Below, in pieces: positions 35,187 through 63,519 of a stretch of 64,000 nt of DNA (positions are counted from its first letter, which is position 1; each line of letters starts with the position of its first letter). The notes beneath the pieces are model-generated. The model did not search any database and was not told the origin of the DNA. It was given only the letters and a program-made list of their open reading frames with translations. The stretch lies in NCBI GenBank assembly GCA_907165135.1, contig OU015567.1:12462001-12526000 (forward strand). Direction: 5' to 3'. Made by a program: the position numbers and the translations under genes. The DNA is from Oikopleura dioica. Its lineage: Eukaryota; Animalia; Chordata.

Positions 35187-38100
35187 TTATCTGCATGAAT
35201 TTTTCATTCTTACCCTCCACCAGTCCAACTGGCCAGCCCATGTTGACTCAACAATACTGAATGTATTTTGCTGATCATCATACATTTGAAGTTTGCCATT
35301 TACATCAGTAAAAACGCTTGCAGCAGGTTTCGATGCGCTCTCATATGAAGCAAAGCAGTTGGTACAAACTGAGGACATGTCGGATCTCAAGCTTCGGCCG
35401 AATGCGGCTCCTGCTCGAAGTTGAGAAGCTGTTACCCAGTTGGCTTTGCATTTGTCAAATCGGGAGATTTCTAAATATTGATTAATATAAATATCTCGAA
35501 TTTCATTCCTTACTTTGTGGGATATTGGAAATCTGGAAGTTCTGCTCCTTCTCAGCGGTACAAGCTCGATGTTGTTTGCAGCCAGCGTTGACGACCTCTC
35601 TGCCGCTTTTTTCGGGTCAAGTATGAATTTATCTTAGAAAACAAAACATTTTTTACAAGAAAAATAGCTTTTCAACCGTTCCTTGAAGTGAACTCGTATT
35701 TAACGTAGCAATCCCAATAGTCACCCTTAGGACACAGTTGAACCTGGGTACATGCTGCAAGACTATCGGTATTGTGGCAAAGTGGGCACCATCTTGCGCT
35801 TCCAAGAGTGGTTCCTGCGAGAGCAATGAATGGCAAACCAGCGTTTTTGATTTCTTCGTCTTCTGAAGCACCTGGTCGATTACCGACGGACTTAAAGGAA
35901 TTAAAGATTCAATAGCAAGATTATATCTTACCTGTGAGCTTTCTCGTAAGTCATCATCAACCTGGTCAGATGCAACAGCAGAAGCACCTCCGATGATGTT
36001 TGGTCGATTATTGCTTGGTGCTGGGGCTGATCCAAAGATTGAGGTGAGGTCGAGAGTGCCGAGAGAGCCGAGGGCAGATTGAATACTGTCCAAGTTAGAG
36101 AAGTCGACGACTTCTTCTGCTGTTGTTGTGGTTGTGGTCGTGGTTGTGGTAGTCGTAGTAGTTGTTGTAGTTGTTGTGGTTGTTGTCGTGGTGGTAGTTG
36201 GTGGGACAAGTGTAATAACTTGATCTCGGAGGTTAGTCTTGACATTCATCGTATTGTAGTCGACGTTAGCGGTAGACAAGAGGCCTTCGAAAAGTGGGCC
36301 AACAATTTCATCGCCGGATGGCTCTGGAACGTCACCGGTCAATAAATGGATGAGAGTAATCTTAACTCGGTGAGTAGGATCGACGTCTCGTCTTCGTCGT
36401 CGTAGCGGTTCAACAGCGACTTGCATTCCCTTGATATCAAGTGGTCCAGATTGCATTCGCTGCTGAACTTCTTGCTTGAAAGCGTCCTCGGATGATTTGA
36501 GCTCGGCAAGGAATTCAATGTCGTTTCGCATGAATCTGTTTCTGATAGGCTCTGGCGTTGTAGTTGTAGTTGTGGTGGTTGAGGTCGTTGTTGAGGTAGT
36601 AGTGGAGGTTGTTGTGACAATGACGGGTGCCTCAGTAACGACTGGAGCATTTCCACCGAAAAGTGCATTCAAGTCAAATTGTCCAAGGTTATTGAAAACC
36701 GAGTTGAGATCGGAAAGATTATTGAGGTCAAGGATCTGGGCTTCTGTTGTTGATGTGGTTGTAGTCGTAGTTGTAGTTGTCGTTGTCGTAGTAGTTGTCG
36801 TTGTCGTAGTAGTAGTTGTCGTTGTTGTTGTAGTTGTGGTGGTGGTTGTAGTGGTGGTTGTCGTTGTCGTTGTCGTTGTGGTGGTGGTGGTGGTGGTTGT
36901 CGTTGTCGTTGTCGTTGTGGTGGTGGTGGTGGTGGTGGTCGTGGTGGTGGTGGTGGTGGTTGTTGTGGTGGTTGTGGTGGTGGTAGTGGTTGTGGTGGTG
37001 GTTGTGGTGGTGGTTGTGGTGGTGGTTGTGGTGGTGGTTGTGGTGGTGGTTGTAGTAGTGGTTGTTGTAGTCGTGGTGGTGGTTGTAGTTGTAGTAGTGG
37101 ATGTTGTGGTCGTTTCTTCAGGTTCAGCCGGGGCAATGTTTATTTCTTGCTGTTGCTGAGGAGCTGGCGCGCCAAACATACTGAAGATGTCAGCTGGTCC
37201 ATTATCACTGTTTCCGAAAAGACTGGCAAACATTGTGTTGAAATCGAAATCAGCTCCGGCAGCTGGTGCTGCAGGTGGTGGTGGAGGAGGTTGAGCTGTG
37301 GTCGTAGTAGTTGTGGTAGTTGTGGTAGTTGTGGTAGTAGTGGTTGTCGTCGTTGTAGTTGTAGTTGTAGTTGTTGTTGTAGTAGTAGTTGTTGTGGTCG
37401 TGGTAGTTGTAGTCGTTGCCGTAGTTGTGGTTGTAGTTGTTGTTGTCGTCGTTGTAGTTGTCGTTGTAGTCGTAGTTGTAGTTGTAGTCGTCGTTGTGGT
37501 AGTAGTTGTTGTAGTAGTTGTGGTGGTAGTTGTTGTCGTCGTGGTAGTTGTAGTCGTAGTCGTTGTGGTTGTAGTTGTTGTTGTTGTCGTTGTAGTTGTA
37601 GTCGTCGTTGTGGTAGTAGTTGTAGTAGTAGTTGTGGTAGTAGTTGTTGTCGTCGTGGTAGTTGTAGTCGTAGTCGTTGTTGTAGTTGTGGTTGTAGTTG
37701 TTGTTGTCGTCGTGGTAGTTGTCGTTGTAGTCGTTGTTGTAGTTGTGGTTGTAGTTGTTGTTGTCGTCGTGGTAGTTGTGGTTGTAGTCGTTGTTGTAGT
37801 TGTAGTCGTTGTTGTAGTTGTAGTCGTCGTTGTGGTAGTAGTTGTGGTAGTAGTAGTTGTCGTCGTTGTCGTTGTTGTGGTAGTGGTAGTTGTGGTTGTA
37901 GTTGTTGTCGTCGTAGTAGTTGTTGTAGTTGTAGTTGTAGTTGTGGTAGTAGTTGTTGTCGTCGTTGTAGTCGTAGTTGTGGTTGTAGTTGTTGTTGTAG
38001 TAGTAGTCGTACTGGTTGTTGTAGTGCTTGTTGTTGTTGGAGCCTCTGTTGTTTCTTTTTTGTTTTTATTTTTCTTATTCTTCTTTCCCTTCTTATTGGG

Positions 38101-38511
38101 TGCCTTATTCGAAGAAGGAATTTGAATATCTGCGTTGTTTCCTTGTGTGTTTGTTGCAGCAGCAGGAGCCCCGCCTCCGAAATTCGCGAATGGGTCAGAT
38201 GGAGCAGCGAAATTAATTGGAGAAGCAGGGGCGGCAGGGGCTGCTGGGGCTACTGGTGCAGCTGGGGCTGGTAGCCCTGGTCCTCCAGCACCAGGTCCAC
38301 CAAACATGGAGAAAATATCTCCTCCGCCTCCAAACAAGTTTGCGAACATTGAGTTGAAATCGAATGCATTTCCTTGCTCTGGTGGGGCCTGCTGTTCAGC
38401 TGGAGCACCTCCTCCGACTGAAAGAATTATCTAAAGTCCAGTTTATCGTTTTAACTTACATAAGTTCTGGCCAAGCGCCGCTGTGACGAAGAATAATAAG
38501 TTGAACTTCAT
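35187..38511 (-). CDS. Secreted poly-threonine mucin-like protein (oikosin-like house component by inference)
   Basis: Signal peptide exon MKFNLLFFVTAALGQ|GTAAG; 898-codon ORF with four Thr tracts; RRRRR site; Cys/Trp-containing C-terminal exons. Confidence 0.85.
36107..38037 (-). repeat. Coding ACN-codon (poly-Thr) tracts: about 38037-37297, 37110-36750, 36610-36560, 36200-36120
   Basis: Continuous GTN triplets on the + strand. Confidence 0.95.
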
Positions 38512-43348: not shown

Positions 43349-44932
43349 TGGAATGTGTTATGTGAGCGTGTCTTTGCAGAATCGACCTTTTTGCAAAATG
43401 GCTATCCTCAGCGGTGGCTGATCCGGCACAACATGCGAAATAGGTAAATTCCACATTTGACGGGGCGATGCCATGAAGGCTTACCGCAACCTATTCAGAT
43501 CTACTGGTAATAAAAATAGTGTCAGCCGTTTTCCAAAAGGTCATTTAGAAGCTTTCCAAAAGCAGTGAGGCCATGTTTTTTGGCAGTTAATATTATGTAA
43601 ATCAAACATTCTCGAAGAGTTCATTTAACATCGATTTCAGTAAATGCTCAGCAATTAAAGCGTCGTATTCAAAGGCAAGACAAGCTAGAATTTAATCCCA
43701 CTGAATTTCATGTCTCAAAATTTCGTCTAGTGGCCGTAGTTGACCGTGACGCCCTCAAGTGGTGCTCTTCTGATAAGGTACGATGCTGTACTCAGCTAGT
43801 TCAACACTTTATCGCCCAGAAAACTTAGAAAGGAAATGCTTCTTTTGAAATATTTTTTGTTCTTTGGCGAGATTTTCGGCGGTTTCAATTTCGAACTCAA
43901 GAGACTATTCTATCCAGATGATAAACTGAACCCGAAGAAAGAAAAGCGGCTCAAACGAAAACAAGAAAAACAAAGACAACTGAATCAATGTCTCGATGTT
44001 CCGAATGGATTCGTAACGCAATTTGCCGATTTGTTTCTGGTAAATTGCCATCAGGGCTTTTGCTTGGGAGCAAATACAGGGGGCACCTTCAATTGCGATA
44101 ATGGAGAGCTCAAGCCAAAAGCCGAATGCACATGTTGTTCAAATAGCTGCGATGGAGACTTGCCAACTGATCCAGAGACAACTTTTAGGCCGCCTATTTC
44201 TACTGCGAATCCTTTTGCGCCAACAAATGGCCCTGCAAGCACGACTTCAGGACTCGTTCTCGATTAATTTTCCTACCTATGATTTTGGACAATATATGAA
44301 CGTGAAACAGGGCCCTGTAAAACCTTAGAAGGGTTGATATCAGCGCAATACGTGGACGCATGGATGAGGCACGACAAATTTGGATTCGCTGTCGAAATAA
44401 AAGTTCCTGCAAATCTTCTTGATTTCTCGATTTCAATGGATTTTCAGGGCAGTAATTCATTCAACATTCAGGTTGTAAAATGAGCTCCGGTCTCCGATAA
44501 TTGTTCAATTTAGACTTGGAATCTGGAATACTGGAACTTCTATCGTGGCAATACTTTTGTTGTGCTTCATTCAAAACGTAGCCCAGAAGATTTAGAAGAT
44601 CGTTTTTCAAAACTCATCGTCGTTGAAGGCCTCAATCTTCAAAAATATCGTATGTTCATCTTCACTTATAAACGTTCTTAAAAAATTCTAGCGATTATTC
44701 AATTCTACGGAGGAAAAGTGAAGAATCACAATTGCTTTAATCGCAACGGTCTTAGTCGAAACAATATTCCTCAGATAGGAAGAAGCTATGAAGAAATTTT
44801 GGATAGAAAGAAGTTCAGAAAACGAAATCTTACGAAGGCATCAGTTCACAACGTTAGAAAATTATACTTTCCACATAAAAACTATTTTAGGTCGTGGTAC
44901 GGAACAACAAGCTCTTCGTCAATCCTATTTAA
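43349..44932 (+). CDS. Probable secreted protein with a Cys-rich module, Pro/Thr linker and a CBM2-like beta domain; 5' end unresolved
   Basis: QCLDVPNGF..NCHQGFC..FNCDNGELKPKAECTCC, linker PTDPETTFRPPIST, then ISAQYVDAW..FGFAVEIKVP..FSISMDFQGSNSFNIQ|TWN. Confidence 0.55.
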
Positions 44933-45184
44933 ATGAATTAACTGTACATGCTCAAAACTGTAACTAAGAAATATATTTTTACAAAAAAGATATTCTGTTA
45001 TTTCTGAGACGTAAGTTTTGATCAGGAAAGTTTAAAGGAAGCACACGAGCTGCTGAATTTGATCAAATGTCAAGAAACTTCGGGCAATTCATTTGAGGTT
45101 CTTTTTTGTTTTCGGTTTTTGGTTGTCTGCTATTTAATAAATTTATTCCACTGATAAAGTAGAATAAACAAGAGATTCGTTAAT

Positions 45185-46552
45185 ATGAAGATTCTTACGT
45201 CAGTCTTTCTCGCTTCAGGATATGTAGATAGAGCAGTTTTTATGAAGAAGTATTCTTAGAGCCTTGAATATCTATTTTTAAGTTTCATCACAAATTGGAG
45301 AAGTCCGCAACGACCTGAAATGTGGTAAATCAGCAGGCTTCGCCATTTGTTCTTCTGACAGTGACTCGTCCAGTTGCTGTAATCATGCTCATGGCAAATG
45401 TCGTTCTTCTCAGTCGAACACTTGCGACTGTCCCACTTGTGTCGATTTCTCGGCTTTATCACGTGGCCTCCTGCAGATAAGGTCCAAGTTAGCGCAAGGA
45501 AGGGGAAACAGACTGTCTAAATATAATTCTTGAGCTTTGAGTTTCGCTGAATAACCCGGACAAAGACTACGAGCCGACAATTAAGGGTCTTTTGCTACAA
45601 AATGCAGACCTGTCGCTAGAATGGGCAATGACCAAAATCCCTCACAGCCCAAATATCAAGAAGATTCTCGATCGAGTCAAATTTAGAACCTCTGAGCTGA
45701 TCAAAAGCATCGAAACAAACGATTGCACAACGGTTGATATCACCGAGCCAGTCAGGAAATGAATTTCGATGCATGTGAAAAAATTAAATGTGAGAAAAAA
45801 AGAATTTTTAAAAATTTAATGAAAGCACGGAGCTATTGACTCAAGTGGCTAACATTCAAGTCAACGAGCAATTTGGAGCGATCTTTGGCCCTGTGATCGA
45901 TGAGTACTTTGCCAAGTGCACTTCGGCGAAAAAAGACAAACTTCTGAAAAGAATGAACAGGATTAACGCAGTTGTTACTCAGTCCTGTAATGAATTGAAT
46001 TTGGTTTGCCCTGGGTTTCAGAAAGCATCGTTCTCATCGGAAGAAACTTCGGGTAAGACAACTAGAAATTCACCAAAGTTAAATTTTTTTATTTACCAAA
46101 TCATTTTCCAAGAAACCGGGCTAGCGCGTGCTCGTCCAAGCTTTTCGTCCTCCTGGTCATCCATTAACAATATTCCGGGTCCTGTTAGCTGGCAACAAGG
46201 CGTAAACAATATCGCTCATAATTATCCGAACGCCTCTAAAAACCGACCATACGGTCGCCCAACTCACACGCCAACAAACAGTCGTCCTCACTCGTCCAAT
46301 AACTGGAGTACAAATCAAAGGTTGAACCTAGTTGTCAAAATTAATACCATGAATCTTTGAATAGGCCTCCTCAAAGCGCATGGATTAAGATTCCAAAATT
46401 CAGTGGAAAATTTTCCGGAAGAAATATGGAAGAGAGTTCAGGTAGTAGGGTAAAACATAAAAGAAAATAATTATTTTCAAGGTCCCTTCGTGAACTTGTA
46501 CAAACATCGAAAAGATGGAAGCTACAATATTCGCCGTCACTTTGAAGGATAA
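45185..46552 (+). CDS. Secreted protein with a hevein/ChtBD1-like Cys module and a helical domain
   Basis: MKILTSVFLAS|VSSQIGEVRNDLKCGKSAGFAICSSDSDSSSCCNHAHGKCRSSQSNTCDCPTCVDF; downstream exons stay in frame to ..RRHFEG*. Confidence 0.65.
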
Positions 46553-46652
46553 CTCTGTAATTTGTATGTAACTTTTTTTTTTAATAAAAGACAAAAAATC
46601 AAGTTCAAAATTTATTTGAATTTACAGAAAAGGAGAAAAGTGCACAGTAGAG

Positions 46653-47102
46653 CTACTTTGGAGATTGTTTGCGTTCGAGTTTCTTCAGATGTCCTCGAAT
46701 AAATGGCAGAAGTTTCTTTGCTTCCTGTACTTGTCGGCTGTAGCGTTTGAGTTTCTTGTCAGTTTCCCAATCTTTCGCCTCTGCGTTCCGAAGAATCGGG
46801 TTTGGCCTTCCATCATCGTCGTGGTGCCCGATAATCGTGTGGAGCTGGAACAGAGCTTTGTAGATCATTCGTTCCTGAGTAGAAGCTGCAGGAGGATCCC
46901 CGGTTTTTGGGCGGCCATCGAGGGGAGAGTTGCTGCTTGATTCTTTCAAGAGTTCTTTGAGTCGCGTATCCAGTCCTAACGGGCTTGACTCTTCAGCTGG
47001 TTTTATCTTACTCGCTGGCATGTTGAAAATATCATCTGATTTGCGCTTTCTCGATTCACTGGTCTTCTTTGGCTCAAAGTTGATTTTCTCGGTAGCTGGC
47101 AT
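46653..47102 (-). CDS. Hypothetical single-exon basic protein with NLS-like RKRK
   Basis: 149-aa ORF MPATEKINFEPKKTSESRKRKSDD..; no recognised domain. Confidence 0.45.
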   Translation of the reverse strand: MPATEKINFEPKKTSESRKRKSDDIFNMPASKIKPAEESSPLGLDTRLKELLKESSSNSPLDGRPKTGDPPAASTQERMIYKALFQLHTIIGHHDDDGRPNPILRNAEAKDWETDKKLKRYSRQVQEAKKLLPFIRGHLKKLERKQSPK

Positions 47103-47499
47103 AATTCGCAAGTAGAGGTACAATTAGTGTACTGGTTTTATTTTCTAGTAATGCCTAGGGGCGAATTCAATTATGAATTTCAAAAGTCAGATTGCTCGGT
47201 ATTTATAGCGCGCGGTGGGTTTGATACAGCTGGTGCTAATTCATAGCTGCAGATGGCGCTTTTTCTCGAAAAGGCCGGGTGCAAGGCCAGCTGATTCTCG
47301 GGCCCTTGGGTCGTTCGGAACATTGGTTTTATTTTTCTTCACAAATTTTATTTCATAGAAACAGGCATTAAAGAAGTGCTTTGATCTTCAAACATGTTTG
47401 TAAGTTCGATTTCATATTTACGCGGCTTGTCAGATCGGACATATCGAAGAAGTTTCACTTCAAGTTTTTTGATTCTCAAAATGCTAATTTAAATCATTA

Positions 47500-47990
47500 C
47501 CTGATCCAGCATTTCTACTTTTTCTTCGAAGTCTTTCCCGCTCGGCCGTTTCTTCTTTCAGTTTCGCCTGGTCAGCGAGTTTCGGCAACTGTCTTCTGAT
47601 CAAATTGAACTTTTCTGAAATACGAAAAAATAGTCGAAGTGTGTTTCCGCCATGTCAAACCGATGATAGCTTTGTCGGAGTCTTGATCGTGACTTTCGTC
47701 GTATTCGTCTGGGTCAAGGATGACCGGCGCGACCGTTGGAATAAGCAAATGATATTTGTGTTGGGGCTTTTCTTATCAAGAAGGTTAGTACATAACCGGA
47801 TATTTGCAGATTAATACCAACAAATTTCTCGCGGAAGTTCCTCAGCAGGCGGCGCATTTCTTTCGTTTGGATTTCTTCCTTTATGTCTTCAATTGACTTC
47901 AAGTTTTTCCGCCGCCGTTGTGGCAGACTGCGGAAGTTGGAAGGACTTCGTCGTTCATGATCGATGCGTTGTCGCTCCAACTCGAGATAG
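47500..47990 (-). CDS. Hypothetical protein exons; structure unresolved
   Basis: Charged ORF ELERQRIDHERR..KEMRRLLRNFREKF plus downstream exon-like segments. Confidence 0.3.
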
Positions 47991-49029
47991 TTGACGCTCT
48001 TTAGAACGGATTATCTTTTTCGATTGAGAAACTTCCAATTTTCGATGAGCAAAATTCGATAGGTCAAAAAAGCTATGGCAACAATGGCAGATAAAACCAT
48101 TTCCTGACCAACTATCAAGCTTCTACTGCCAAGGTGTCTTAGTTTAGCTCCCAAGCAGTATTTACAAATTAACAGATCAGCTAATAATTGCTCTCAACTT
48201 TCAAGATAGAGTCAATACTGTTCCTTTATGTGCGTCATGAAAACCGCCGCTGCCGAAAACCGTCTCATCTAATTGCCGTCGTAACCGATCGTTTTTTACA
48301 TGTGCTAACAAATATTTTTAGAAAATTATAACTAGTAGTTATTTTCTTGATAACTGGCACCCACGTTTGTCTTGTCTATAAAAAGTATTTTGCTTATCTT
48401 TAAAAAGTAGACATTTCATGTATGGCTAAAACTCAAGAGAAACTGTTTTTTTTATCAAAAAAGTCATATCTAAGCTCAGGATGACATTTTTACGTGCGAA
48501 CTCTTCAAAATTGCGTTAATCCCTGAGCAAATTTGCATAGGTCGATACACTTTAAAATTTATACTGTATCTTCCTTACCGATGAAGGTTCGTTTCTTTTC
48601 TTGCTCTTTAGATTTCTGATAGTTTCTCTCGGTCTTCGACGGACTTCTTAGGTCGTATTGCATTTTTGATTTAGATTCAAGTGGGAGCGATAGGCGCCCA
48701 TCAGCAGATTATTTGCTCGGAAAGTCAATTTGTGTTGATCCAACTCCTTTTCCAGATACTGTAAATGTCATGTTCGCCTGTAGCAGTAGCTCATCAGAGA
48801 AGGGCAATAAAATTTTACGCCACCATGTGAGAGGCGAAACCACATGCGATCATAAGAGCGCACTTTGCATTGTCTGAAAACTACTGTTGGTGTAGCACAG
48901 GCGTTTCCCATCGCGATCGTTGAACTCCACCAACTGACGAATTTTACGCTCCGTCAGTTCTCCGATGCCTCGGGGCGGTGGAGGAGCATCTTTGCATCTA
49001 TTATATTTCTCCGTCCGACTTATTAAAAT

Positions 49030-50782
49030 ATGGAGCTATTTTTAAGCTCGTTAAGATTTTTCGTCAAAAGCTTTACAGTAGTAGAGAAATACAAGTATTT
49101 AATTTGGTACACATTATGTTTCTGGACAGGATGGAAAATGGTTTCTTCAAAAGCTTATTCAGAGAGTCTTTCGCATCGTTACTTACCGAATTCAAACACA
49201 GTAATTGGATTGCATTATTATTTATGATTAGGCTAAAAATTAAGATTGATGGAGAATACACAGACGCAAAGAAAGCAAAATTCTTCATGTGGGAGGGAGA
49301 AAATCCTGTCGCTCCGGTAGAATCTGATGCGCAGAAGCCAAATTACTCAAAATTCCTTTCAAATTACAACGAAGAACAAAGATCTGGGAAAGTCCCTTAC
49401 GTATTTGACTATATCCCGTCAATGTTCTTGAAAAGCCCGTCTCTGCAGAGATCCTATAACGACTTTGCGATAAAGCACGGCAGTGGGTTACGGAAGCAAA
49501 CGAAGGGGACGGTTCTGCTGACGTACTACCGTTCCGGGTCAAGTTTTCTTGGACAGCTTTTCAATCAACATCCTGATGTGTTTTACCACTTTGAGCCGCT
49601 CTTTCCGTACTCGAGGGATTGCTCGTCTGATTCTCCTGCTTTCAAGGTGAAAAAATCCGTTTATGTTTTCTAACTTTTTGTAGAAAGAGAAAATCGAAAA
49701 TCTCGAAAGAATACTGTCATGTGACATGCCAAACATGCGAAATCTCACCCAAAAGATTCAACACTTCAACCCAAACCTTTACAACTCAAGGCTCTGCCTC
49801 TTGACTGGTGCATGTTTTCGTTTCAACTCCCTTAGTCTTTGCGATCCGCGGCTGTGCCCGCCAATGCCTGGTGGAGAATTGAAATGCTCGAGTTGTGGGC
49901 CTCTAAATTTGGAACTGACGGACGACCTCTGCAGGGAGAAAGAAATGACGGTTGTGAAAACCATTCGAATATGCAACGGTTCCTGGTTAGACTCAATTTC
50001 TAAGTCAATGTCTCTCAAAGTCGTCCATCTCATTCGCGACCCGCGAGCCATCGCTAAGTCCCGACTATCAATCCCCGATGATCCAATAACAGAAGCTGAG
50101 ATCGTCAAAAATGTTACTGATCTATGCAAACAACAAATGCTGACCCATGAAAAATACTTTGGAAGCGATGACTACTCAACGGTTCTTTATGAAGATCTGA
50201 ATCGAATGCCGTTTGATAAGACTCAGGAAATTTATGATTTCGTGGGTTTGACCTTTCATCCGAAAGTGAAAGGCTGGATCCGACAAAATACAGGCGCTTC
50301 AAGGTTAGATCTGATGGATATGCAAATCTTTAATAATGTTTAGGGTACGGCGCGAATCTCTCGATCTCAAAGATTTCCACGTCGCAAAACGAACCATGAT
50401 CGATGACAAAGAGGTGATTCTGTACGAAGACAACGCTGGACATAACTACACGAAAACGAAGTTCAAGGTCAAAGAAACTCAAGATATGCTCCTTCAAAAC
50501 AGCATGCCTGACATGTCGAAAATAATCGTCCAAGAAGTCAACTCACCCGACAGAAAGAGGACCGTCGTCCACAATCAAATTCTCGAAGCGAGAAATCCCT
50601 TTGGCACGTATAGAAACTCGGCGACGGTTTTGGAGACATGGCCAAGCAAACTCCCGTTTGAGATAGTTGACGGGATTCAGAAGGGATGCAGTGAGCTTAT
50701 GGAAGAATTCGGTTACAAGTTTGTACGATCAAAAGAAGAATATGAAGATAAGAATCCCTCGTACCTGCCTGAACTTCAGTGA
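49030..50782 (+). CDS. Golgi carbohydrate 6-O-sulfotransferase (CHST1/CHST2-7 family)
   Basis: N-terminal signal anchor; 5'-PSB LLTYYRSGSSFLGQLFNQHPDVFYHFEPL; 3'-PB KVVHLIRDPRAIAKSR; VLYEDL; C-terminal RNS..W..L..IQKGCSELMEEFGY. Confidence 0.9.
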
Positions 50783-51174
50783 GATAGATTTCGTTACTGT
50801 AAATAAATATTCCCCCATCGATTAGTGGCTGAACGCGTTCTTCTTTATATGGTTTGTTTTGACTCATTAACACGGACCAAATTGTCAGCCAGGGACCGGT
50901 GAAGTCTAACTGAGTTGGTAAAGTTTTTCATCATCGCCTAAGAATTTGATGCAAAAATAATTTTCCCACGATAAAACGAATATTTAGCTTATGGTTTCTT
51001 GAGTTTTTTTACTTGCGGACAAAGTTTTGGTAGACATACCACTAGAAAAATATTATAGCATACAATAAATAAGATACACTGTATTTTTTCACAAGAAACT
51101 TCTCAAGTTGATGCTGAAGATTGAATGATGATGAATTTATTGTGGAACTGAGACAACTGTTTAGTTGAAGGCCT

Positions 51175-53548
51175 TTAGAAAAGGTAATGGGCATTGTTGA
51201 AAGGATCAAATGGATAAGGGCAGTATCCGAAATTAGGATTGACGTTTGGATTCTGAATGGCTGGCTGAGCAGGGAGACCCCGGGCGAGCATTTTGCAGCG
51301 CCACTCGTTCAATCGCCATCGCGCTGGGCCGGGCTGGTTCACTGACTTGTCGCTCCAAAGCCGCTCGGCTAACAAAACCCTTAGAATCGGAAGAGATTGA
51401 GGACAACTTACCGACAGCGCTAGCGCGGGGCCAGATTCGCTGAAGAATGTTTGTTCCGTCGACGAATTCGCCCCACATCGCCGCTGAACCGCCCATGACA
51501 AGTTTGTTCTGCTCAGCGGTGCCGTTGAAGTCAGTTGGTTCGATAACGTAGTAGCCTTCCCAATCAACGCCGTATGAGATGATATTGAGATACCAAGGGG
51601 AGGCGAGAATGGCTTTGTGGCCAGATTTCGTGACCGCATTCATGGTGTCCTTCCATGTTCCAGATCTTCCCTTCCAAACTTCAACGACGGTTTCATTTGA
51701 GATTTTCACTCCATTGACGAATACTTCTTCCCAAACAACGTAGTTTTTCTTCAAGTCGTGTGCGATGTCGACCATTCCTACCGAAATAAATCATTAGAAT
51801 TTGAAATTTTTCTCTATTTTAATACCTTGAACCCAAAGTTGTTCAAGTTGCGCGTACGTAGTCAAATTATTCTTCGCCATATACGCAGTTATATCTGCGT
51901 TAGACTTCCAGCAGCCAAATGGAACTTCATCGCCGCCGAGATGCAGGTAGCTATCGCGAAAGACTTCGTTGACTTCTGTGAATAGTTTTCGCATGAGATC
52001 GTAGTTTTCTTGGTAGATGGGGTTGATTGGCCCGTGGCTTCCGTCGGGCTCGCCATTGTGGTAGCAAGGAGTCAAGAATTTCGGGCCACCGCCGGGTCCC
52101 CAAGCGTCGGTATGACCGGGAGTGTCGAACTCTGGAACAACTCGGACGCCTAGAAGATGATTTACGGGTTGCTTCTCGCTGATAGAATTTACCTCTTAGG
52201 CGGGCGAATTCGATGATGTCTTTGATTTCGTGAATGGTGTAGACATGGAGTGGTGTGTAAGATCCAAGGAAGCTGAGTTCCGGCAACACTTGCGATTCAT
52301 AAGGGAAGCTTTGCAGGTCGACAATATGCCAGTGAAGAATATTCATCTTATTCCAAGACAGGGGTGTGCATTCGGCCCGAAATCGGGTGTCGGGCTGACC
52401 GAGGGCCGAGCCGAAACGAAAAAATCAGTGTTGGGCCGGCCGAAAGCCGAGCCGAGCCGAGGTGCCCGAAGTGCCCGAATCGGCTTCGGCTCAACTTTCG
52501 GCTCGGGCAATTTGGGCAAATTTTCGGGCATTTCGGGCAATGATTTTCGGAAAATTAATATTAATCTGAGCTCAAAAAACAACCGATTTTGAGGAAAATC
52601 GGCCAAATCAGTCGAAGAATCAAGCACAGATCTCTGTAAAATTCTTTCTTACTCTCTAACTTTGGCCGGGTGCCCGGTTGCCCGAAGATTGGGCCGAATT
52701 GCCCGAATGCCCGAGCCTGCCCGAGAGAATTTCAGGTCACCGGCCGACCGAGAGCCGAGCCGAACCTGATTTGCCCGAAAAATTTGTCGGGCAGCCGAAT
52801 GCCCGAGAGCCGAATGCACACCCCTGTTCCAAGAAAGAGCGCTAGAAAATGCGAGTTATTGCCAAATATATATTCTAGGACTCACGTGATCTGAGCTTTG
52901 ATGACGGAAATAGGAAGATAATGTCGGGAAGTGTCAATTAAAAATCCTCTGAATGGAAATCTAGGCCAATCGGTAATCATGGTCGAATTTACACTCGGTC
53001 GGTAGTCAATATTGTGAATCATCTGCGTGAAGCTCTCCAGTCCATGAATTACTCCCCACTCGGCACTGGCTGTCAATTCAACTTTCTCGGGCGTTGGAGA
53101 GCCGACTTGAAGGGTGTACGATTCGTTCATATTTTGAGAAGGGTAGTTTTCGCAGTTGATGATTTTGACCTCAATTGTCTCGATGATTCCAGCGGCAGAG
53201 GAGGCTGAGAACTTGAGCTTTTTGGAACTAGAACTGGCGATTTTGAAGTGGGAACGGATCAGATCTTGGTATCGCTGGAAGATGTCGGGGATAATGTCGC
53301 ATTGGGGCGACTCAGGAGTCAGAACGAACTGGATATTTGCATCTGAAAAGAAATTGAGTGATTGAATACATTCCGTTAGTGTAAGGGCTTGATTGTTTTT
53401 TAGACTCACCTAAAATTTGAAACTCTTGCGTCACCGTCATACTCTGCGGCAAAGGCCAAACCGTGCCATCGTACTGCCACGGCGGCAGAAATCTATCAGC
53501 TGCATTCGTTAGCGCATTTCCAAGAAGAAATGCGGAAAGAAATTTCAT
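51175..53548 (-). CDS. HEXB: Beta-hexosaminidase (GH20, HEXA/HEXB-like), interrupted by a MITE in a coding exon
   Basis: VWPLPQ, PRFPFRGFLIDTSRHYL, NKMNILHWHIVDLQSFPYES, PEFDTPGHT, YLHLGGDEV, ASPWYLN, MGGSAAMWGEFVDGTN..IWPRASAV. Assignment to HEXB rather than HEXA is not resolved. Confidence 0.9.
52359..52826. mobile_element. 468-bp non-autonomous hAT-type element
   Basis: 18-bp perfect TIR CAGGGGTGTGCATTCGGC / GCCGAATGCACACCCCTG; perfect 8-bp TSD TTCCAAGA (52351-52358 and 52827-52834); many subterminal GCCGA/GCCCGA repeats. Confidence 0.95.
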
Positions 53549-53723
53549 TTTTACATTCAGTTACGATTTCTCTAAAAAAAGAATTTGAGCGTATTTTCTG
53601 CCGGCGTTTCGATTTGAAAATGGGAGTAGTTCACACTTGAATGGCAAAAACAGACAAGAATCGATAAAAATTTTATGCTCTCGCGCCCTGACCTAGAAAA
53701 TTAGGGAAAATCGTTTTTGAGCT

Positions 53724-54483
53724 TTATTCTGAAAGTTTTTTCAAAAATTCCAATTCTGGCTGTTCATTCTGCTTTTCGATTTCTTCAGGGAACATCGTTC
53801 CAACTGCATCTCTCGCAAACTCGGCAAATATCGGCTCTTGCATCGCCTGGTCGAGCAAGAATCGAATATCCGTCGAGCTTCGTTCTGAAACAATCTCTCC
53901 TAGCATCGGCCGCAAGTGGGGATTGAACAAGTGCCGTTTGATCAAGTCTGTGTTCAATCGTTCCAGTCGGTGGACTTCTACTTTGTCTTGAGATATTACA
54001 GAGTCGATTTCCTGAAGAAAGGGCTGATTAGAATGTTTGAAAAGTGGAAGGGAAAAACACCTTCAATCCAGGTTTCTTGGCGGGTTTGCGCTTTCTCGGG
54101 ACACAAGTTGTTTTGTGGATCTTGTAGCATTCTACTTTACAGTAATTTGACAGGCAGGCAGGGCATCTGTACTTTGGGCTTTCTATCTTTCAAAGAGTTG
54201 AAAAAAATCGGATATTTTAATTTGAAAATGTGAGAAAAAGGTGATTTTCGCTAAAGAAGAGGATTAAAATTGATTGAATTACTCTTTCCTTGCATTCCAC
54301 GCAGATCTTCAACGGTTTGACTTCCACTTCTGTCGTTTTCACTTGCTCTGGCTTTTTGAAATTTCCATCCCTTTTTGAATTATTCTGATTTCTGCTCCCT
54401 CCACGGCCTCCTCTTCCTCGACCTCTTCCTCTTCGGTGATTTCCTCTGTGATTACTCCTTTCTCGTTCGATCTGTTCAGTCAT
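53724..54483 (-). CDS. ZNHIT3: Zinc finger HIT domain protein 3 (box C/D snoRNP assembly)
   Basis: CVECKE..CPACLSNYC..CYKIHKTTC HIT finger; LFNPHLRPML..AMQEPIFAEFA C-terminal motif; extra RGG-rich N-terminus. Confidence 0.85.
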
Positions 54484-55020
54484 TTTCTGAAAAAGTCGGG
54501 ATCAGCAGGAGAAACTCTTGAAAATTGGAGATTTGAAAAGAGAAAATCGGGCGGAACATGCGCGCTTATTGGCCAGCGGCGCTCCCGACCGAGAGATTGA
54601 GCCGCAATTTTTAATGCATTTTTTCTCAAGAGAACAATAATCAGCTGTCTTTTCTGCCACTCTTTAGGTTTTTTGAGTTGAAAAAAGTATTGAGAGATAA
54701 CGAGAAGACACGAAAAAATGAATTTAGTAGAGAATGTTATCTGGAAATCATTTTATCATGTATTAAAAGTACCTGGCTTTAGTTATGAGTCTTATTGTCT
54801 ACGATACGAAGTATGAATCAAAGTAATTTGTCTCGTAAATCTGAAAATCAATTTATTAAATATCCATTATTCTTAAAAAACAAGTTGTGGTCTTCACTAA
54901 CAGAAAGAAAAAATCAACTGTCAAACAACTTCACTTTCAATTTATTTCGATGCTTGTCCATAATTATTTCCCCGGAGGAAAATTTTTGTTTTCAGAACAA
55001 AAGTTCGAAAAGCAAGAAAA

Positions 55021-56755
55021 ATGCCGCTGGAAGAGCTGAAACGATACGCGTCACAAGTCAAAAAACTCTGCGACAAGGAAAAATATGGCGATGCCGGTCA
55101 GCTACTCAATGCGTTGAAGGAAGAAAAAATCACAAAAGAACTGCTCGAAAGCTCGAAAATCGGTCATGTCGTCAATGCACTGAGAAAGGGGGCACAAAAT
55201 GCTGGACACACGGAAATCGCTGCTCAATCGAAATGTAGATTTTGATTATATAAAAATGTATATTTATATATAAACATAAAAATTGCTCTGAAAAAGAAGT
55301 GATTCACTTCATGTATCTATATTTATGAGATTTTAAATTGATTTATTTATGTCTTAGGAGGGAAACTCTCTTATTTGCCCGCTGAAATCGAAACATAAAG
55401 AGTCAAGTGTAATAAAGATTTACAGCTACTCGCCAGAATAAATATCAATCCTCAATTGTGAATTGCCAATTTTCAATTGCGCATCGATTTTATTCTTGAA
55501 TTCAAAACAGAGACGCTTTTTGAGAAATTCCTATGCCAGGAATTTACGTTTAAGTTTTTCCTTTCTAGCTCTGATCAAACAATGGAAAGCGCAAATGGCT
55601 CAAAACGCGGACAATGGGGGAACGCCGAAAGTACAGAAGACAGAGAGCAGCTCACAGAAACGCGAAAAAGAAAAGGAAAAGCTGCCTGTCGCGAATGATT
55701 CTTCTCCAAATCTTGGCGCTTCTATTCAACCCACTTCGGATCCGAGCAGAAACAAATGCAGAGAACTTCTCCAGAAAGCCCTGATGGTTGATAAAGATAA
55801 ATACCAACCGCAGTTTGTTAGCCTAATGGCCGCTAAAATTGAAGGTATTCGACTGATCCTTAGATTCAGGGTAGAGGGGGCCTGTAAGTCCTTATTCTTG
55901 ATTTCAGAGGCAATCTTCACCTTCCACGGCTGTTCAAGCTCAGACACGAAATACCGAAACAAAATCCGCTCTCGCTACTCGAACCTCAAAGATGCCAAAA
56001 ACCCGGAGCTGCGCGACTCGGTCATGAGCGGCATCATTTCTGCCGAAAAACTAGCCAGCATGAAGCCAGAAGAAATGGCTTCAAAGCAACTTCAAGAGTT
56101 GAGGAAGAAATTCACTAAAGAAGCGATTAATGACCACCAAATGGCGCAGAATGAAGGCACAAAGACGGATATGTTTACTTGCGGAAAGGAAAGAGGTTCA
56201 AGATTCTTCTTGAATGCAGTTTTCTTTTTTGAAAATACCAGTTGGCATGAGTCGCCCAAAGAATAAATCGAAAGAGCATAAACTCCCGTAAACACGCAGT
56301 TACTGCAAGAGAGTTGGCATTTTCAGTTTGCTCAGCGCATCTGTGACATCATTACGAGTAAATATTTAGCGAGTGAAATTTCATTCCATTTCCTTTCACT
56401 TTGTAGGATCACTCGTACGAGACCATTGATAAAGTAAAAATATGATTTGATTAACATTTTTATTGAAAAAAAAAAATGGAAGAGATATAAAATGAAAAAC
56501 TTAAAGTTCGTTTTTGCGTAATCGCAAATACAGGAATATTCAATGAAACTTCTTTTTAATTCAGAAATGTTCTAAAATGAATCCGTATATCATTTATATA
56601 AAAATATCCCGCTCCACCATAAAATATCTTTAACCTCTCGAAAGTGCAAGGGCAAAGAATGCACATACACCCAGCTCCAAACCCGATCTGCCGATGAGCC
56701 GATGACGACCTTCGTTTACTGTATGAGCTGTGGTAATCGATGGAAATTCTGCTAG
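55021..56755 (+). CDS. TCEA1: Transcription elongation factor TFIIS
   Basis: [54 protein letters not shown]|[40 protein letters not shown] paralogue number not resolved. Confidence 0.95.
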
Positions 56756-57287
56756 CTCCTTTTCTTTTGTTTTCCCTATTTTTAAAATTTACATTTACAT
56801 TTTTTCCGGCCATGTTTAAATTTAGCCTGTACAGAAAGAGAAAAAACTAGAACTAAAAAGGTGCTTTTTAGCTTTTTTGAAGCATGAGCTTTCTTTTAGC
56901 TAAAAAAGAAACTGGTGAACAGAAACAGAATCTACCATATTTTCAATCTACTAGTAGTATATTTATATGAGTGAACATACAACTACATGTGAGCAAACAC
57001 GAATTCATAAATACAGAAAAATCCTCCCTGACAGTATCCCAATCTCAAAGATCTATCAACTTAAAACTTGTATCCAAAATATTTTGCGATAAGGTTATTA
57101 CGTTACTATAATTTTTACTGCCCAAATACTGTCAACTGAAAATCTACAAAGTCTTGTTACTGAAACTTACTCTCACTTTTACTTACACTCAGGATGAGTC
57201 ACTCATATATAACTTTACATTACTATTCTTCTTTTCGTAAAAATAAACCTTTGCCCGGCCAATTTATCAACCCAAAATATTCAGAAA

Positions 57288-59310
<2,023 letters not shown>

Positions 59311-59750
59311 CTGTGTTTTTTATTATAACTGCTCTCCACCACCAATTTTTCTCCAGTTCAAAAACTCCTCACAATCGCAACTCTTTTCTCCGCTCTTTTC
59401 CGCAGTCCTTCATTCCTGAAATCTCTTCATCCGCACAAGCAGCTGTCTAATTGAATATATTGCTACTTTTGTAAATATAAAAAAATACAACCGACAATCC
59501 ACTTCTTTCCAATTTCAAGCATCGTACGAGAAAAATGTGAAAAAAGTTCAAAAATCCTTGAAATTTTTATTTTTAATTCGCTCCTGAAAGAAAAACTGAT
59601 TACTCAAAGTGTAATGAAATTGTAATTCATTCTACCTCCACCAAAATATACTAGACCTACAAATAGTCACTTACGGAGCCGATTTTCTAGAACATCGGGA
59701 TTGCTCCTGTTATTACTGATAAAAGGCTCACAGTGTAAAAGGAGTGAGCG

Positions 59751-62267
59751 ATGACGCAAAAGGCTGCTGCAAATCCTCATCGCTCGGCGGTGGTCCAGAC
59801 GGAACGCAAGCATGACTATTTATACTCAAAAGGTAAGCTCTCCAGACTTATTTTTCGTAATAACAAAATTGGCTAGACTATCATGTTTCGGGGCCAAGGG
59901 ATCACAACCGCGCCATCTATCGGGCAAAGACCAATACTGATAATGTTAAGAAAATGTTCAGGTAAATCGCTTTAACTTTCATACCTTTTAATTATTTTAA
60001 ATTTAAGCCATGAAAAAATGTTCTCGGAACTTCGGCATCATCCTCGGTTTGAGACGGTGCTTGTACAAAAAGACCCAGTACCTTCGTTTATCAACAAGAA
60101 TTACCAAGACAAAGCTCAAATCGACCGCCAGGAGACGATGTTCTACGGAGCTAGGGATGTCGGAGGCGAGGACAGATACAAGTATTTCAGAAGGCCAAAT
60201 GTTCCATTCAGTCAGGTATATATCCTCTTCAAAGGCTCTTTTCTAGCGTTTTCAGGCTCCAGCAGACGTAATTCTTGAGCCACCACGCCAAGTTGTCCAT
60301 ACAAATGATTCGGTCGTCCAAAGAACTCGTACACTCGCCACACAAACCGACTACCGCGATCAAGAATCTCAAACCGAACCATACTCTCCCGACTACACGG
60401 TCGCCCCTGGTCAAAATCCCGAGATCCTCTCTCTCGCAGGGCTCAAGTACAAACGTGGCCTGCCAGCGGGCGTCGCCGAAGTGACGATGATCGAGCGTGC
60501 GCGGGATAAACGTCGCTGGGAGGAAAGTCTCCCGCCGCTCAACGACCCGTCCCAGATTCACAAGCGGCGGCTGATGATGGAGCAACGCGAAAAATTTGAA
60601 TGGCAACAGCGTGACAGAGAAATTGAAGAAATCCAAAAAGAAAAACTTGACGTATGTACTCTTTTCTAACCCGTTTCCTTTTCTTATTCCTTTTGTAGAT
60701 AATGAAACAAGAATTAAAAGCTGAATATGAAGAATTTGCCGGATTATTGGAAGAAGCACTTGAAGAGACTGCTGTCAAGCTCGCGAAAGAAGCTGAAGTA
60801 AAAATAGATAAAGTAAAGAAAGGTACTCTTCGTCTCTAAAACTCCATTTTCAATCTTTTCTTTCAGAACACGTCAAGAAGCAAAGGCGAATAAAAAAATA
60901 TGCACACATAGATACGCCATATCTAGGAGAAGATTACAAGCGAGACATCGTTAAGGATTATATTGATTATGGGTCGGAGGTGAGCTTTTTTAGCCAGCTT
61001 GAAATTTTAGTGTTGTTATAGACATATGCACCGATCGCTAGACACGGTCAAATCGGCGATAAAACGAGCAGCAAGTACCACGTGCAGAGTAAATATCTCG
61101 ACACTTATGAAGGTCTATGCGCGCTCGAAAGATCCATCGGGAAGAGTCTCACAGAAACGTACATCCGCGCTCCTGCACCAAAACAAGGACCTGGCAAGGA
61201 CGGCTTCGTTCGACGCAAGGACAGGATGGACTGGGACCTCAAAGAGTCTTACGACATCATTCAGAAGCAAAAGGCCGAACGAGAGCTCAAGCGACAGCCG
61301 CGACTGCTTGTTGAAGTTCCTCCACCAGCACCTCGACCAGTTACTCCTACTTGCGAGGCGCCAGGCGAGAACTTCCAAAAGAAACAGATCGCAGCAACTC
61401 TTCTTCAAAAACTCCTGCGAGGAATGGCTTCGCGACGAGAAACTCTCGCCGAGTTGGATAGACGACGCGATCTCATCGAAGAAGTCAGATCTACTCACAT
61501 TCTTCTCGAGTCCGAAAAGAAGGCGAAAGATGCCGAGAAGCAACGGGTCATGGATCGAAGGAAGGTCGAAAAGGACATGCGAGCAGAGCACAATGAGGTC
61601 TCAGAGATTGTCCACGGCGTTGCTGGAAAGAAAGCGCAGAGAATCTTGGACTTCTTGCAGAATGAGCTTATTCGACTTCAGGATGAGCGAAGGTAAGATT
61701 TTCGATGAAATTCTCTCCTAAGTTCTCTTATTTAGATGCCATGCATTCGCAATTCTAGCAGAGCGAAAACGACGCATCCGGGAAGCCGAGGAAGCTGGAC
61801 TTCGCCAAGAAGAAGAGCGCCGCCGCCGAGAAGAAGACGAAATCTGGCAAGAAGTCGTCAAAACTCGCCACCAGTCCGTCGACCAGTACTTGCTCAAGAT
61901 CGCTAGCGAGGCAACCAACTTGGCTGCTGCTGAGCTCGCTGAAGAGCAAATTGAAAAGATGGTCGATGTTATTGACACAAACCCTCGTGGCCTCTCGTCA
62001 CGGTGAGTCTTTATTTCTTATTCTTATAAACGATTTCACGGCATATTCTCGCCTCCAATAGAAATTCACATGCCTGAATTTTAATTTTATTCTTTTCCTA
62101 GCGACCAAGCTGCGGATATGGTTCACAACTTCTTGATTCCCGAGGTCGTCCGACGAGAGCATCTTGAAGAACCACATCGAGAACGAGAAGCTCGACTCAA
62201 GGCTGCTCGAAATCTGCTCTTCCCGATTGTCGATGGAGACGAGAAAGAGTGCCAGACCGAAGAATAA
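59751..62267 (+). CDS. CFAP91: Cilia- and flagella-associated protein 91 (MAATS1)
   Basis: TQTDYRDQESQTEPYSPDY..PEILSLAGLKYKRGLPAGVAEVTMIERARDKRRWEESLPPL; IQ-like LLQKLLRGMA; DFLQNELIRLQDERR. Confidence 0.88.
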
Positions 62268-62470
62268 TCCTCCGATTTCTTCAACTTTGTTACTATTCCT
62301 CTGAGTCCATATATTATTCAATCTCTTTATTCAAATATTTTTCTATTCAACAAATCTTTTATTTATAATAAAGAACTATATTTTTATACAAAAATTGTGT
62401 GTCGTTTACTAAAAAAAACGTGGATAAATTTGGATTTTTTCTAGCTTTTCTACTTTAATTTCGTAATAGA

Positions 62471-63412
62471 ATGGCAGCTCCACTTTCGCCTAGAAGTAAC
62501 AACACTGGAAACATAACCAAGTCTTTCCAAAAATGCTCATTATCCGGCGAACTTGTCAATTTCCAGATTTTATGTCAGTCAACGAATCTCGGCTCATTAA
62601 CCGAAAAACGATACGACAAGGGATTGAGTATCCGGGAGCTCAAGGGCAAGCTTGAATTAATAACAGGTAATCTACAGCTGAGCCGCTGGAATTTGATTTT
62701 CTGATTGCTAGGATGCTCGCCTGCTTCGATGAAGCTCTCGCTCGAATCGAGAAAGGGCGAGAAGATTTGCGACATGGACGATGATGAGCGACTTCTTGGA
62801 TCGTACCCAGTCGAGGACTGTTGCGGGATTAGGGTCATTGACCCAGAATCCTTTGACTGGTCCGACTTGAACAAGATCGAGAAACAGGAAATGGACGATG
62901 ATACCTACGATACTTTTAAGCCGACTTCAGTTAAGCCTACTGTTCGCGAATACAAGGTACATCAGTAAATCTAGTTCATACTCATTTCGTTTTCAGAGAA
63001 TTCACAAGCTGGGCATGTTTAATCCAGAAAACCAAAAGAAAGCGCTTGAAGATATGGAGGCACAGGAGAAAAAAGACAAAGAAGCAAGAGAAAAGTAGAA
63101 TTCACTGCCTTTTTCGCCTTATTAATTTTATTTTTTAGCTTCAAAGTTGGCCAGCGATGCGAAGTGACGTTGAAATCAAAGGGCAAACAACGCGGCGAGG
63201 TCAAATTTGTTGGAAACGTGTCTTTTCAGCCCAACGTCTGGATCGGAATCCAGCTCGATCTTCCGTATGGCAAAAACAACGGAACAGTCGAAGGACAGAA
63301 GTATTTTGAATGTCCGAACAATTTCGGTGTGTTTGCCAAACCTGATTCGGTAGAAGTCGGTGATTTTCCAAATGAAGAAGATGATCTCTTCTCGTCTGAA
63401 GATGAGATCTAA
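62471..63412 (+). CDS. TBCB: Tubulin-folding cofactor B
   Basis: Ubiquitin-like EKRYDKGLSIRELKGKLELITG|CSPASMKL..LLGSYPVED; CAP-Gly RGEVKFVG..WIGIQLDLPYGKNNGTVEGQKYFEC..GVFAKP; acidic tail EDEI*. Confidence 0.95.
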
Positions 63413-63519
63413 TGAACGTTTTAGTTCCTAGTTTTTTGTATTGAATAACTTTCTGTAAAACCCTCTTTTAGTATGTAAAGTTTATATCTCTATGTTCCTA
63501 GAACAAGCTTTCTGCAGTA

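Follow-up and report, generated by a model that had tools for sequence, protein, structure and literature searches.

How Oikopleura dioica came by its thousands of gained introns is still under debate, and a polymorphic transposon in a coding exon, accompanied in the same assembly by a matched copy with the empty site, provides a natural test case for intron birth versus gene breakage. Here we describe such a case in a stretch of 64,000 nt (the window; contig OU015567.1 of assembly GCA_907165135.1, positions 12,462,001 to 12,526,000 of the forward strand), where a short non-autonomous element with hAT-like ends sits in the third exon of a GH20 beta-hexosaminidase gene, OKI2018_I69.chr2.g7514 (g7514 in the following). 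Coordinates refer to the window unless the contig is named, and a slash marks a splice boundary.

The interrupted hexosaminidase gene and its element

The gene and the parts of the element were located as follows:

51178..53548, minus strand: GH20 beta-hexosaminidase gene g7514, from Pfam matches, exon reconstruction and translation without the element
52359..52826, no strand assigned: putative non-autonomous hAT-like element, i.e. a MITE (miniature inverted-repeat transposable element), 468 nt, 54.7% GC, from sequence reading, a repeat finder, a pattern search and a hexamer count
52809..52826, minus strand: terminal inverted repeat (TIR) CAGGGGTGTGCATTCGGC at the gene-upstream end, holding the candidate splice donors AGG/GGTGTG, GGG/GTGTGC and GGT/GTGCAT
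52359..52376, plus strand: TIR at the gene-downstream end, on the gene strand GCCGAATGCACACCCCTG, C-rich and just before the first downstream AG
52827..52834, minus strand: target site duplication (TSD), copy 1, TCTTGGAA, within the S-W-N codons, where the alignment with the second gene copy (locus L011) overlaps by exactly 8 nt
52351..52358, minus strand: TSD copy 2, TCTTGGAA, from sequence reading, a structure scan and the L011 alignment

Six exons make up g7514 (53548-53410, 53342-52886, 52841-52193, 52149-51826, 51777-51412 and 51368-51178), with the third one interrupted; the five introns between them are all canonical GT-AG introns of 43-67 nt. On the exon pieces Pfam finds PF14845 (Glycohydro_20b2), PF02838 and PF00728 (Glyco_hydro_20), with profile positions 1-341 covered, and the combination of an N-terminal GH20b domain and a GH20 catalytic domain places the gene in the GH20 family. 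Exon 3 starts at 52841, is preceded by an AG at 52843-52842 and is entered by the element after 15 nt. An earlier note on this DNA had placed the insertion inside this coding exon and had claimed that taking out the element together with one TSD copy restores the GH20 segment ALSWNKMNILHWH; reading and reconstructing the sequence confirms both. Conceptual removal yields an open reading frame (ORF) of 550 aa, which reads ...KAQITALSWNKMNILHWH... and is 98.9% identical to CAG5113336.1, a protein named beta-hexosaminidase in UniRef. The public g7514 protein, identified by profile search, is CAG5113403.1 with 508 aa, and its locus DNA (L010) is 100% identical to the window.

A larvacean GH20 gene of about 50% identity (protein P0004; L014:455-610, from the Tara/ENA metagenome contigs L014-L016) has a canonical 143-nt GT-AG intron that separates the W and N codons of S-W/N-K, 2 nt from the insertion point in g7514. 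This gene is without the intron found in O. dioica 15 nt upstream of the insertion point, and in its own 143-nt intron neither a TIR nor a TSD is evident.

The element itself is delimited by perfect TIRs of 18 nt, to which a pattern search of the window returned two matches against 0.01 expected, and it is the sole structure in a window-wide scan to combine a perfect TIR of at least 11 nt with an 8-bp TSD (offset control, 0). The hexamers TCGGGC/GCCCGA are concentrated in both of its subterminal arms, which contain 14 of the 33 occurrences in the window; subterminal repeats are common in class II elements. Two features of hAT elements are present at its ends, namely an 8-bp TSD (TCTTGGAA/TCTTGGAA, perfect, with the 8-nt overlap at the empty site in L011) and a short TIR (about 10-25 bp) starting with (C/T)A(G/A), which here begins CAGGGGTG. 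We take these termini to resemble those of Ac, hobo and Tol2. When compared with the hAT target consensus nTnnnnAn, TTCCAAGA fits at position 2 only and its complement TCTTGGAA at position 7 only. On the basis of the 8-bp TSD, the CAG... TIR and the subterminal repeats, assignment to the hAT superfamily seems reasonable.

Population evidence comes from two O. dioica DNA runs, X1 and X5, in the form of Logan short-read contigs. In both, the ends of the element are also linked by contigs to different flanking sequences, and its depth is 2-10 times that of one haplotype, i.e. the family looks small and multi-copy, with a low copy number. Being small and non-coding, with TIRs, a TSD and several copies, the element has the characteristics of a MITE. 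Its ORFs contain no Pfam domain, an exact database look-up of one ORF product returned no record, and Rfam gave nothing at the gathering score over the element region (mir-8521 scored 30.7 bits, whereas its gathering score is 80). Since the TIRs and the TSD are perfect and the two gene copies near-identical, these features agree in pointing to a young insertion.

The commonest form of the family in the X1 and X5 contigs carries about 49 extra nucleotides at window position 52608 and three more substitutions relative to the window copy. Nine loci in JGI metagenome contigs, found by an exact TIR scan, were rejected as further copies: each has a single TIR and no second arm, most have 54-68% GC, and they are to be regarded as chance matches in unrelated DNA.

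Empty sites and a second copy

An uninterrupted second copy of the gene, g7447 (CAG5113336.1; 550 aa, intact ORF; locus L011), is located 197.65 kb away on OU015567.1 and has the same neighbours as g7514, namely genes for a CAP-Gly protein, CFAP91, a kinase, TFIIS and a sulfotransferase. L011 and the window are 97.3% and 96.1% identical on the two sides of the element, and their alignment is interrupted precisely at 52827 and 52358, with 8 nt shared by the two parts, i.e. g7447 contains the exact empty site. Besides the element, no further indel of at least 15 nt was found between L011 and the window in 19 kb. The copies can be told apart by 62 substitutions across the aligned 2.3 kb around the gene. 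With the element removed, g7514 differs from g7447 in 6 of 550 residues; 32 of the nucleotide differences are synonymous and 6 non-synonymous (proportions per site pS 0.089 and pN 0.0047, ratio 0.05). This low pN/pS ratio shows, at the level of sequence comparison, that both copies were under purifying selection until very recently, up to the insertion.

The earlier note had suggested looking for the empty site in other individuals, and in addition to g7447 it is present as DNA in both X1 and X5, where a contig joins 52350 to 52827 and omits 476 nt (with 8 ambiguous letters), as well as in an independent ENA contig ORF, P0001, which is 97% identical and continues as ...ALFLGIR before a stop. 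The filled site is found in X1, in a 60-nt contig that spans flank and element (52329-52388) with 0 mismatches and a depth of 89.7; this compares with depths of 150 for the empty joint and of 87.2 for a window-type contig over intron 4. Because the variant letters in X1 equal those of L011 at 36 of 36 listed sites, X1 carries exactly the two versions found in the assembly. For X5, an empty joint at roughly the complete local depth means that the insertion is rare or absent there. The insertion is real, i.e. not an assembly error, and it is not fixed.

Gene g7514 belongs to a larger duplicated block, which comprises most of the window (13774-37059 and 44202-63506) and is collinear with, and 96-98% identical to, a region about 200-215 kb upstream (loci L013, L011 and L012; OU015567.1:12,261,264-12,327,855). 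The first part, window 13774-37059, matches OU015567.1:12,261,264-12,284,331 at 96-98%, and gene pairs in the block include g7432/g7504 (XPC/Rad4) in addition to g7447/g7514 (GH20). The window at about 37-44 kb has no counterpart in the approximately 25 kb that separate the matching parts of the other copy. Position 44202 had been considered as an end of the duplication and was ruled out, as homology picks up again further left (g7432/g7504).

Ways of splicing across the element

Transcripts of the interrupted gene could be processed in several ways, which differ in the predicted protein:

52347..52819, minus strand: candidate GT-AG intron of 473 nt, donor ggt/GTGCAT, acceptor GGAATAAG/atg, predicted product WNRGMN with 551 aa
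52347..52822, minus strand: candidate GG-AG intron of 476 nt, donor agg/GGTGTG, predicted product WNRMN with 550 aa
52347..52992, minus strand: 646-nt intron of the public g7514 model, donor agt/GTAAAT in exon 2, acceptor as in the 473-nt route
52649..52651, minus strand: first stop in frame upon retention of the element, at residue 263, so that the product breaks off at residue 262, ahead of most of the catalytic domain

The earlier note had already pointed to a 473-nt interval that runs in frame from a GT at 52819 to an AG at 52347, with WNK changed to WNRG, and to a stop within the element upon read-through; all its numerical statements hold. The mRNA junction predicted for the 473-nt route is AACAGGGGT/ATGAAT. 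Splicing by the 476-nt route would give AACAGG/ATGAAT and would change only K to R at native length. A competing GT at 52821 (475 nt; GGG/GTGTGC, with G at +5), located 2 nt upstream of the 473-nt donor, would produce the junction AACAGGG/ATGAAT, which is out of frame and leads to a stop at residue 222. Retention of the element would add 57 element-derived codons before the stop. The public model, finally, drops 42 residues of the catalytic domain (VNSTMITDWPRFPFRGFLIDTSRHYLPISVIKAQITALSWNK, including RGFLIDTSRH) with the junction CCGAGT/ATGAAT. It was generated by AUGUSTUS, for which RNA-seq reads had served as intron hints in training and which was also run using hints. The 646-nt intron is a workaround of the predictor, and the 508-aa protein is probably not a real isoform; the choice made in the annotation also faintly suggests that no intron hint backed the 473-nt route.

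Removal of the element without any footprint, by means of the TSD, is ruled out, as no register of TCTTGGAA ends in AG. The AG used by the candidate routes belongs to neither the element nor the TSD but to the host, 4 nt further on, and the in-frame outcome would therefore be a matter of luck. With G-N donors at offsets -1, 0, +1 and +3, some in-frame route was almost guaranteed by chance to be predictable. At the RNA level, two bulk runs of 2026, X29 and X30, yielded only 15-18 reads, all of them partial and loose-ended at conserved motifs, and exon 3 is covered by none; these reads stem from a paralogue or a diverged lineage and are uninformative on g7514 splicing. In older O. dioica RNA runs, a fraction of 0.00 of the words of the hexosaminidase gene is present.

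Gene breakage, duplication or intron birth

An important question is whether the insertion destroys g7514 or is removed from its transcripts. The reading that we favour, and regard as fairly probable, is that a recent, non-fixed hAT-like MITE insertion disrupts one haplotype or duplicate of the hexosaminidase gene and is tolerated beside an intact version. A low-copy non-autonomous transposon would have inserted recently in exon 3 of the gene, which exists in two nearly identical versions of which it struck one, with the other one, g7447, about 197 kb away, keeping the empty site and the full ORF as part of either an uncollapsed second haplotype or a tandem duplicate. Such an insertion would most likely inactivate or cripple g7514, with retention leading to the stop and cryptic splicing to mostly aberrant products, and it may persist since the intact version occurs in the same animals rather than since the element already works as an intron. 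We infer loss of function of g7514 and a lack of efficient in-frame splicing. Whether haplotype or duplicate, an intact version is present alongside the interrupted one. The earlier note had offered the alternatives of an intron being born and of a recent null allele in one haplotype: the empty site and intact ORF of g7447 and the empty sites in X1, X5 and P0001 directly support the null allele, and the intron stands as a possibility read from the sequence.

Several observations weigh against gene disruption or one of its components. Two in-frame routes exist (473 nt, GT-AG; 476 nt, GG-AG), and the TIR provides both G-rich donor candidates and a C-rich tract ahead of the first downstream AG. 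About 11-12% of the introns spliced by O. dioica are non-canonical, and its spliceosome is thought to be permissive. The RNA runs yielded no g7514 transcript either way. Moreover, the ratio of window-type to g7447-type depth in X1 is about 0.6, a value that suits neither a simple heterozygote nor a pair of fixed loci, so that the choice between allele and duplicate is one of probability.

The latter choice matters for the alternative that fares best, i.e. that the block at a distance of about 200 kb arose by a genuine tandem segmental duplication, which may be polymorphic, and that g7514 is a true and redundant paralogue being lost to the transposon instead of one allele of a single-copy gene. 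This is possible, if rather doubtful. Both blocks are on one chromosome scaffold, at offsets of 197.65 kb and 214.5 kb, and differ internally in structure by a change of about 17 kb, and X1 depths of 88-90 for the window type and 150 for the g7447 type are closer to 1:2 than to 1:1. These depths, however, lack a genome-wide single-copy baseline. According to the assembly paper, the sequenced individual was 3.6% heterozygous, which equals the 2.2-4% divergence of the blocks, and the draft, 1.5 times the haploid size, was reduced from 99.3 Mb to 64.3 Mb by a single round of HaploMerger2 before Hi-C scaffolding. In addition, a pN/pS ratio of 0.05 means that constraint is not relaxed in either copy. 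With matching divergence, collinear and adjacent blocks and intact coding constraint, we lean somewhat towards uncollapsed haplotypes rather than a duplication.

Less likely still seems a nascent intron, i.e. that a permissive spliceosome removes the element by using a donor in the TIR (GT at 52819 or GG at 52822) and the AG at 52348-52347. If so, a near-native enzyme would be made (WNK to WNRG or WNR), the insertion would be nearly neutral and it could become fixed as a new intron. Both routes do stay in frame and restore a full-length ORF, and the public model uses the same acceptor. Non-canonical introns, at 11-12% in O. dioica, are enriched among new introns, transposon insertion is listed among the sources of intron gain in Oikopleura, and MITE-derived introns have been described in Fritillaria. 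However, the splice sites of both candidates (GTGCAT and GGAATAAG in the 473-nt one) are weaker than those of all five real g7514 introns, which have the donors GTGAGT, GTGAGT, GTAAAT, GTATTA and GTAAGT and acceptors with T-rich tracts ending in CAG or TAG; at 473 nt versus 43-67 nt, the 473-nt candidate would also be about ten times as long as these. The out-of-frame GT with G at +5 just upstream of the 473-nt donor would compete with it, and RNA of the element is predicted to fold into a hairpin (-239 kcal/mol, z = -10.4), in the terminal stem of which the TIRs pair and the donor is buried. As the AG comes from the host exon, nothing in the design of the element secures the frame, and the hint-trained annotation passes over this intron.

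Conservation of the protein points in the same direction. The 90% cluster of the hexosaminidase gene has 15 members, and all 13 that span the site read SWNK(Y/M)N; the lysine of W-N-K is also kept in more distant larvacean relatives, i.e. in every relative spanning the site. A WNRG or WNR product was found in none of the cluster members spanning the site, where the sole entries of the Okinawa lineage are annotation. Finally, the insertion is not fixed and the intact copy removes the need for splicing. An in-frame splice route that is read only from the sequence is weak evidence for an intron, and overall the evidence leans against efficient in-frame splicing. More improbable again is the far-reaching version in which the element is efficiently spliced with a donor in the TIR and the first host AG downstream, the enzyme is active and the case is one instance of a genome-wide class of hAT elements in O. 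dioica that are tolerated in exons since a permissive spliceosome handles them like introns, which would provide a polymorphic and datable snapshot of the gain of new introns by the thousands in this species. Disruption of one of two versions is thus the reading that we retain. An assembly or polishing artefact, with the element put into the exon by misassembled Nanopore reads, is scarcely credible: it has only the general error rate of long-read assemblies in its favour, and the independent short-read contig of X1 that crosses the flank/element junction without mismatch excludes the assembly artefact that the earlier note had envisaged as a refutation; a perfect 8-bp TSD and an exact empty site are the signature of real transposition.

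The closest precedents, besides ordinary transposon insertion polymorphisms, are transposons in exons that are partly spliced. Purugganan and Wessler are said to have described, in 1992 (Genetica 86:295), Ds and dSpm insertions in maize exons (wx, adh1 and bz alleles) that are reportedly spliced in part via cryptic sites in the element ends. Typically, maize alleles with Ds in an exon are leaky mutants and not true introns. The situation in g7514 is similar in that a non-autonomous hAT element with a donor-like GT in its terminus sits in a coding exon, and most of it could be removed by means of cryptic sites or the acceptor of the host, leaving a few extra or changed codons. Unlike in maize, however, splicing in g7514 is only predicted, the host is an animal whose introns are very short and whose spliceosome is permissive, and an intact copy coexists.

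Two further systems concern elements that did become introns. Introners of Micromonas and other protists (Huff, Zilberman and Roy 2016; Gozashti et al. 2022; review PMC11282704) are likewise MITE-like DNA transposons with TIRs and a TSD in coding sequence and a candidate splice site in a terminus; they bring one splice site and form the other inside the TSD, which makes their removal an inbuilt property, and have hundreds to thousands of intronic copies. By contrast, the candidate donors in g7514 are in the TIR but the TSD is without AG, with no register of TCTTGGAA giving one and the AG used being 4 nt beyond it in the host, in which respect the element departs from a defining feature of introners, and the family looks low-copy. 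In Fritillaria borealis, also a larvacean, MITE-derived non-canonical introns with TIRs and TSDs have been found (Henriet et al. 2019), and as described in two sources (PMC11282704, PMC13326754), the spliceosome has adapted to odd sites, the introns being mostly AG-AC or AG-AT, fixed and demonstrably spliced. In contrast, g7514 has only GT-AG introns, its element is polymorphic and its status as an intron is that of a candidate. When compared with transposon-insertion null alleles in highly heterozygous marine invertebrates, the insertion has the same profile: it is recent and non-fixed, with perfect TIRs and TSD, an empty site and an otherwise intact host ORF. An ordinary transposon insertion polymorphism is most likely the category that fits, and nothing essential is different.

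For users of the OKI2018_I69 (Okinawa) assembly it is relevant that a large near-identical block on chromosome 2 can make haplotype-specific lesions look like features of single-copy genes. Within the window, a single-exon ORF of 898 aa is located at 35653-38349 on the minus strand; Pfam assigns it to no family at E <= 0.001. The copies of the block also differ by a second transposon polymorphism, a 396-nt piggyBac-like element at window 29621-30016, in a non-coding part of the range of a serpin gene; it has TIRs GGGGGTAGAACTAGG... and a TTAA duplication, and is missing from the other copy, where the empty site is GTCATTTAATCCACTG.

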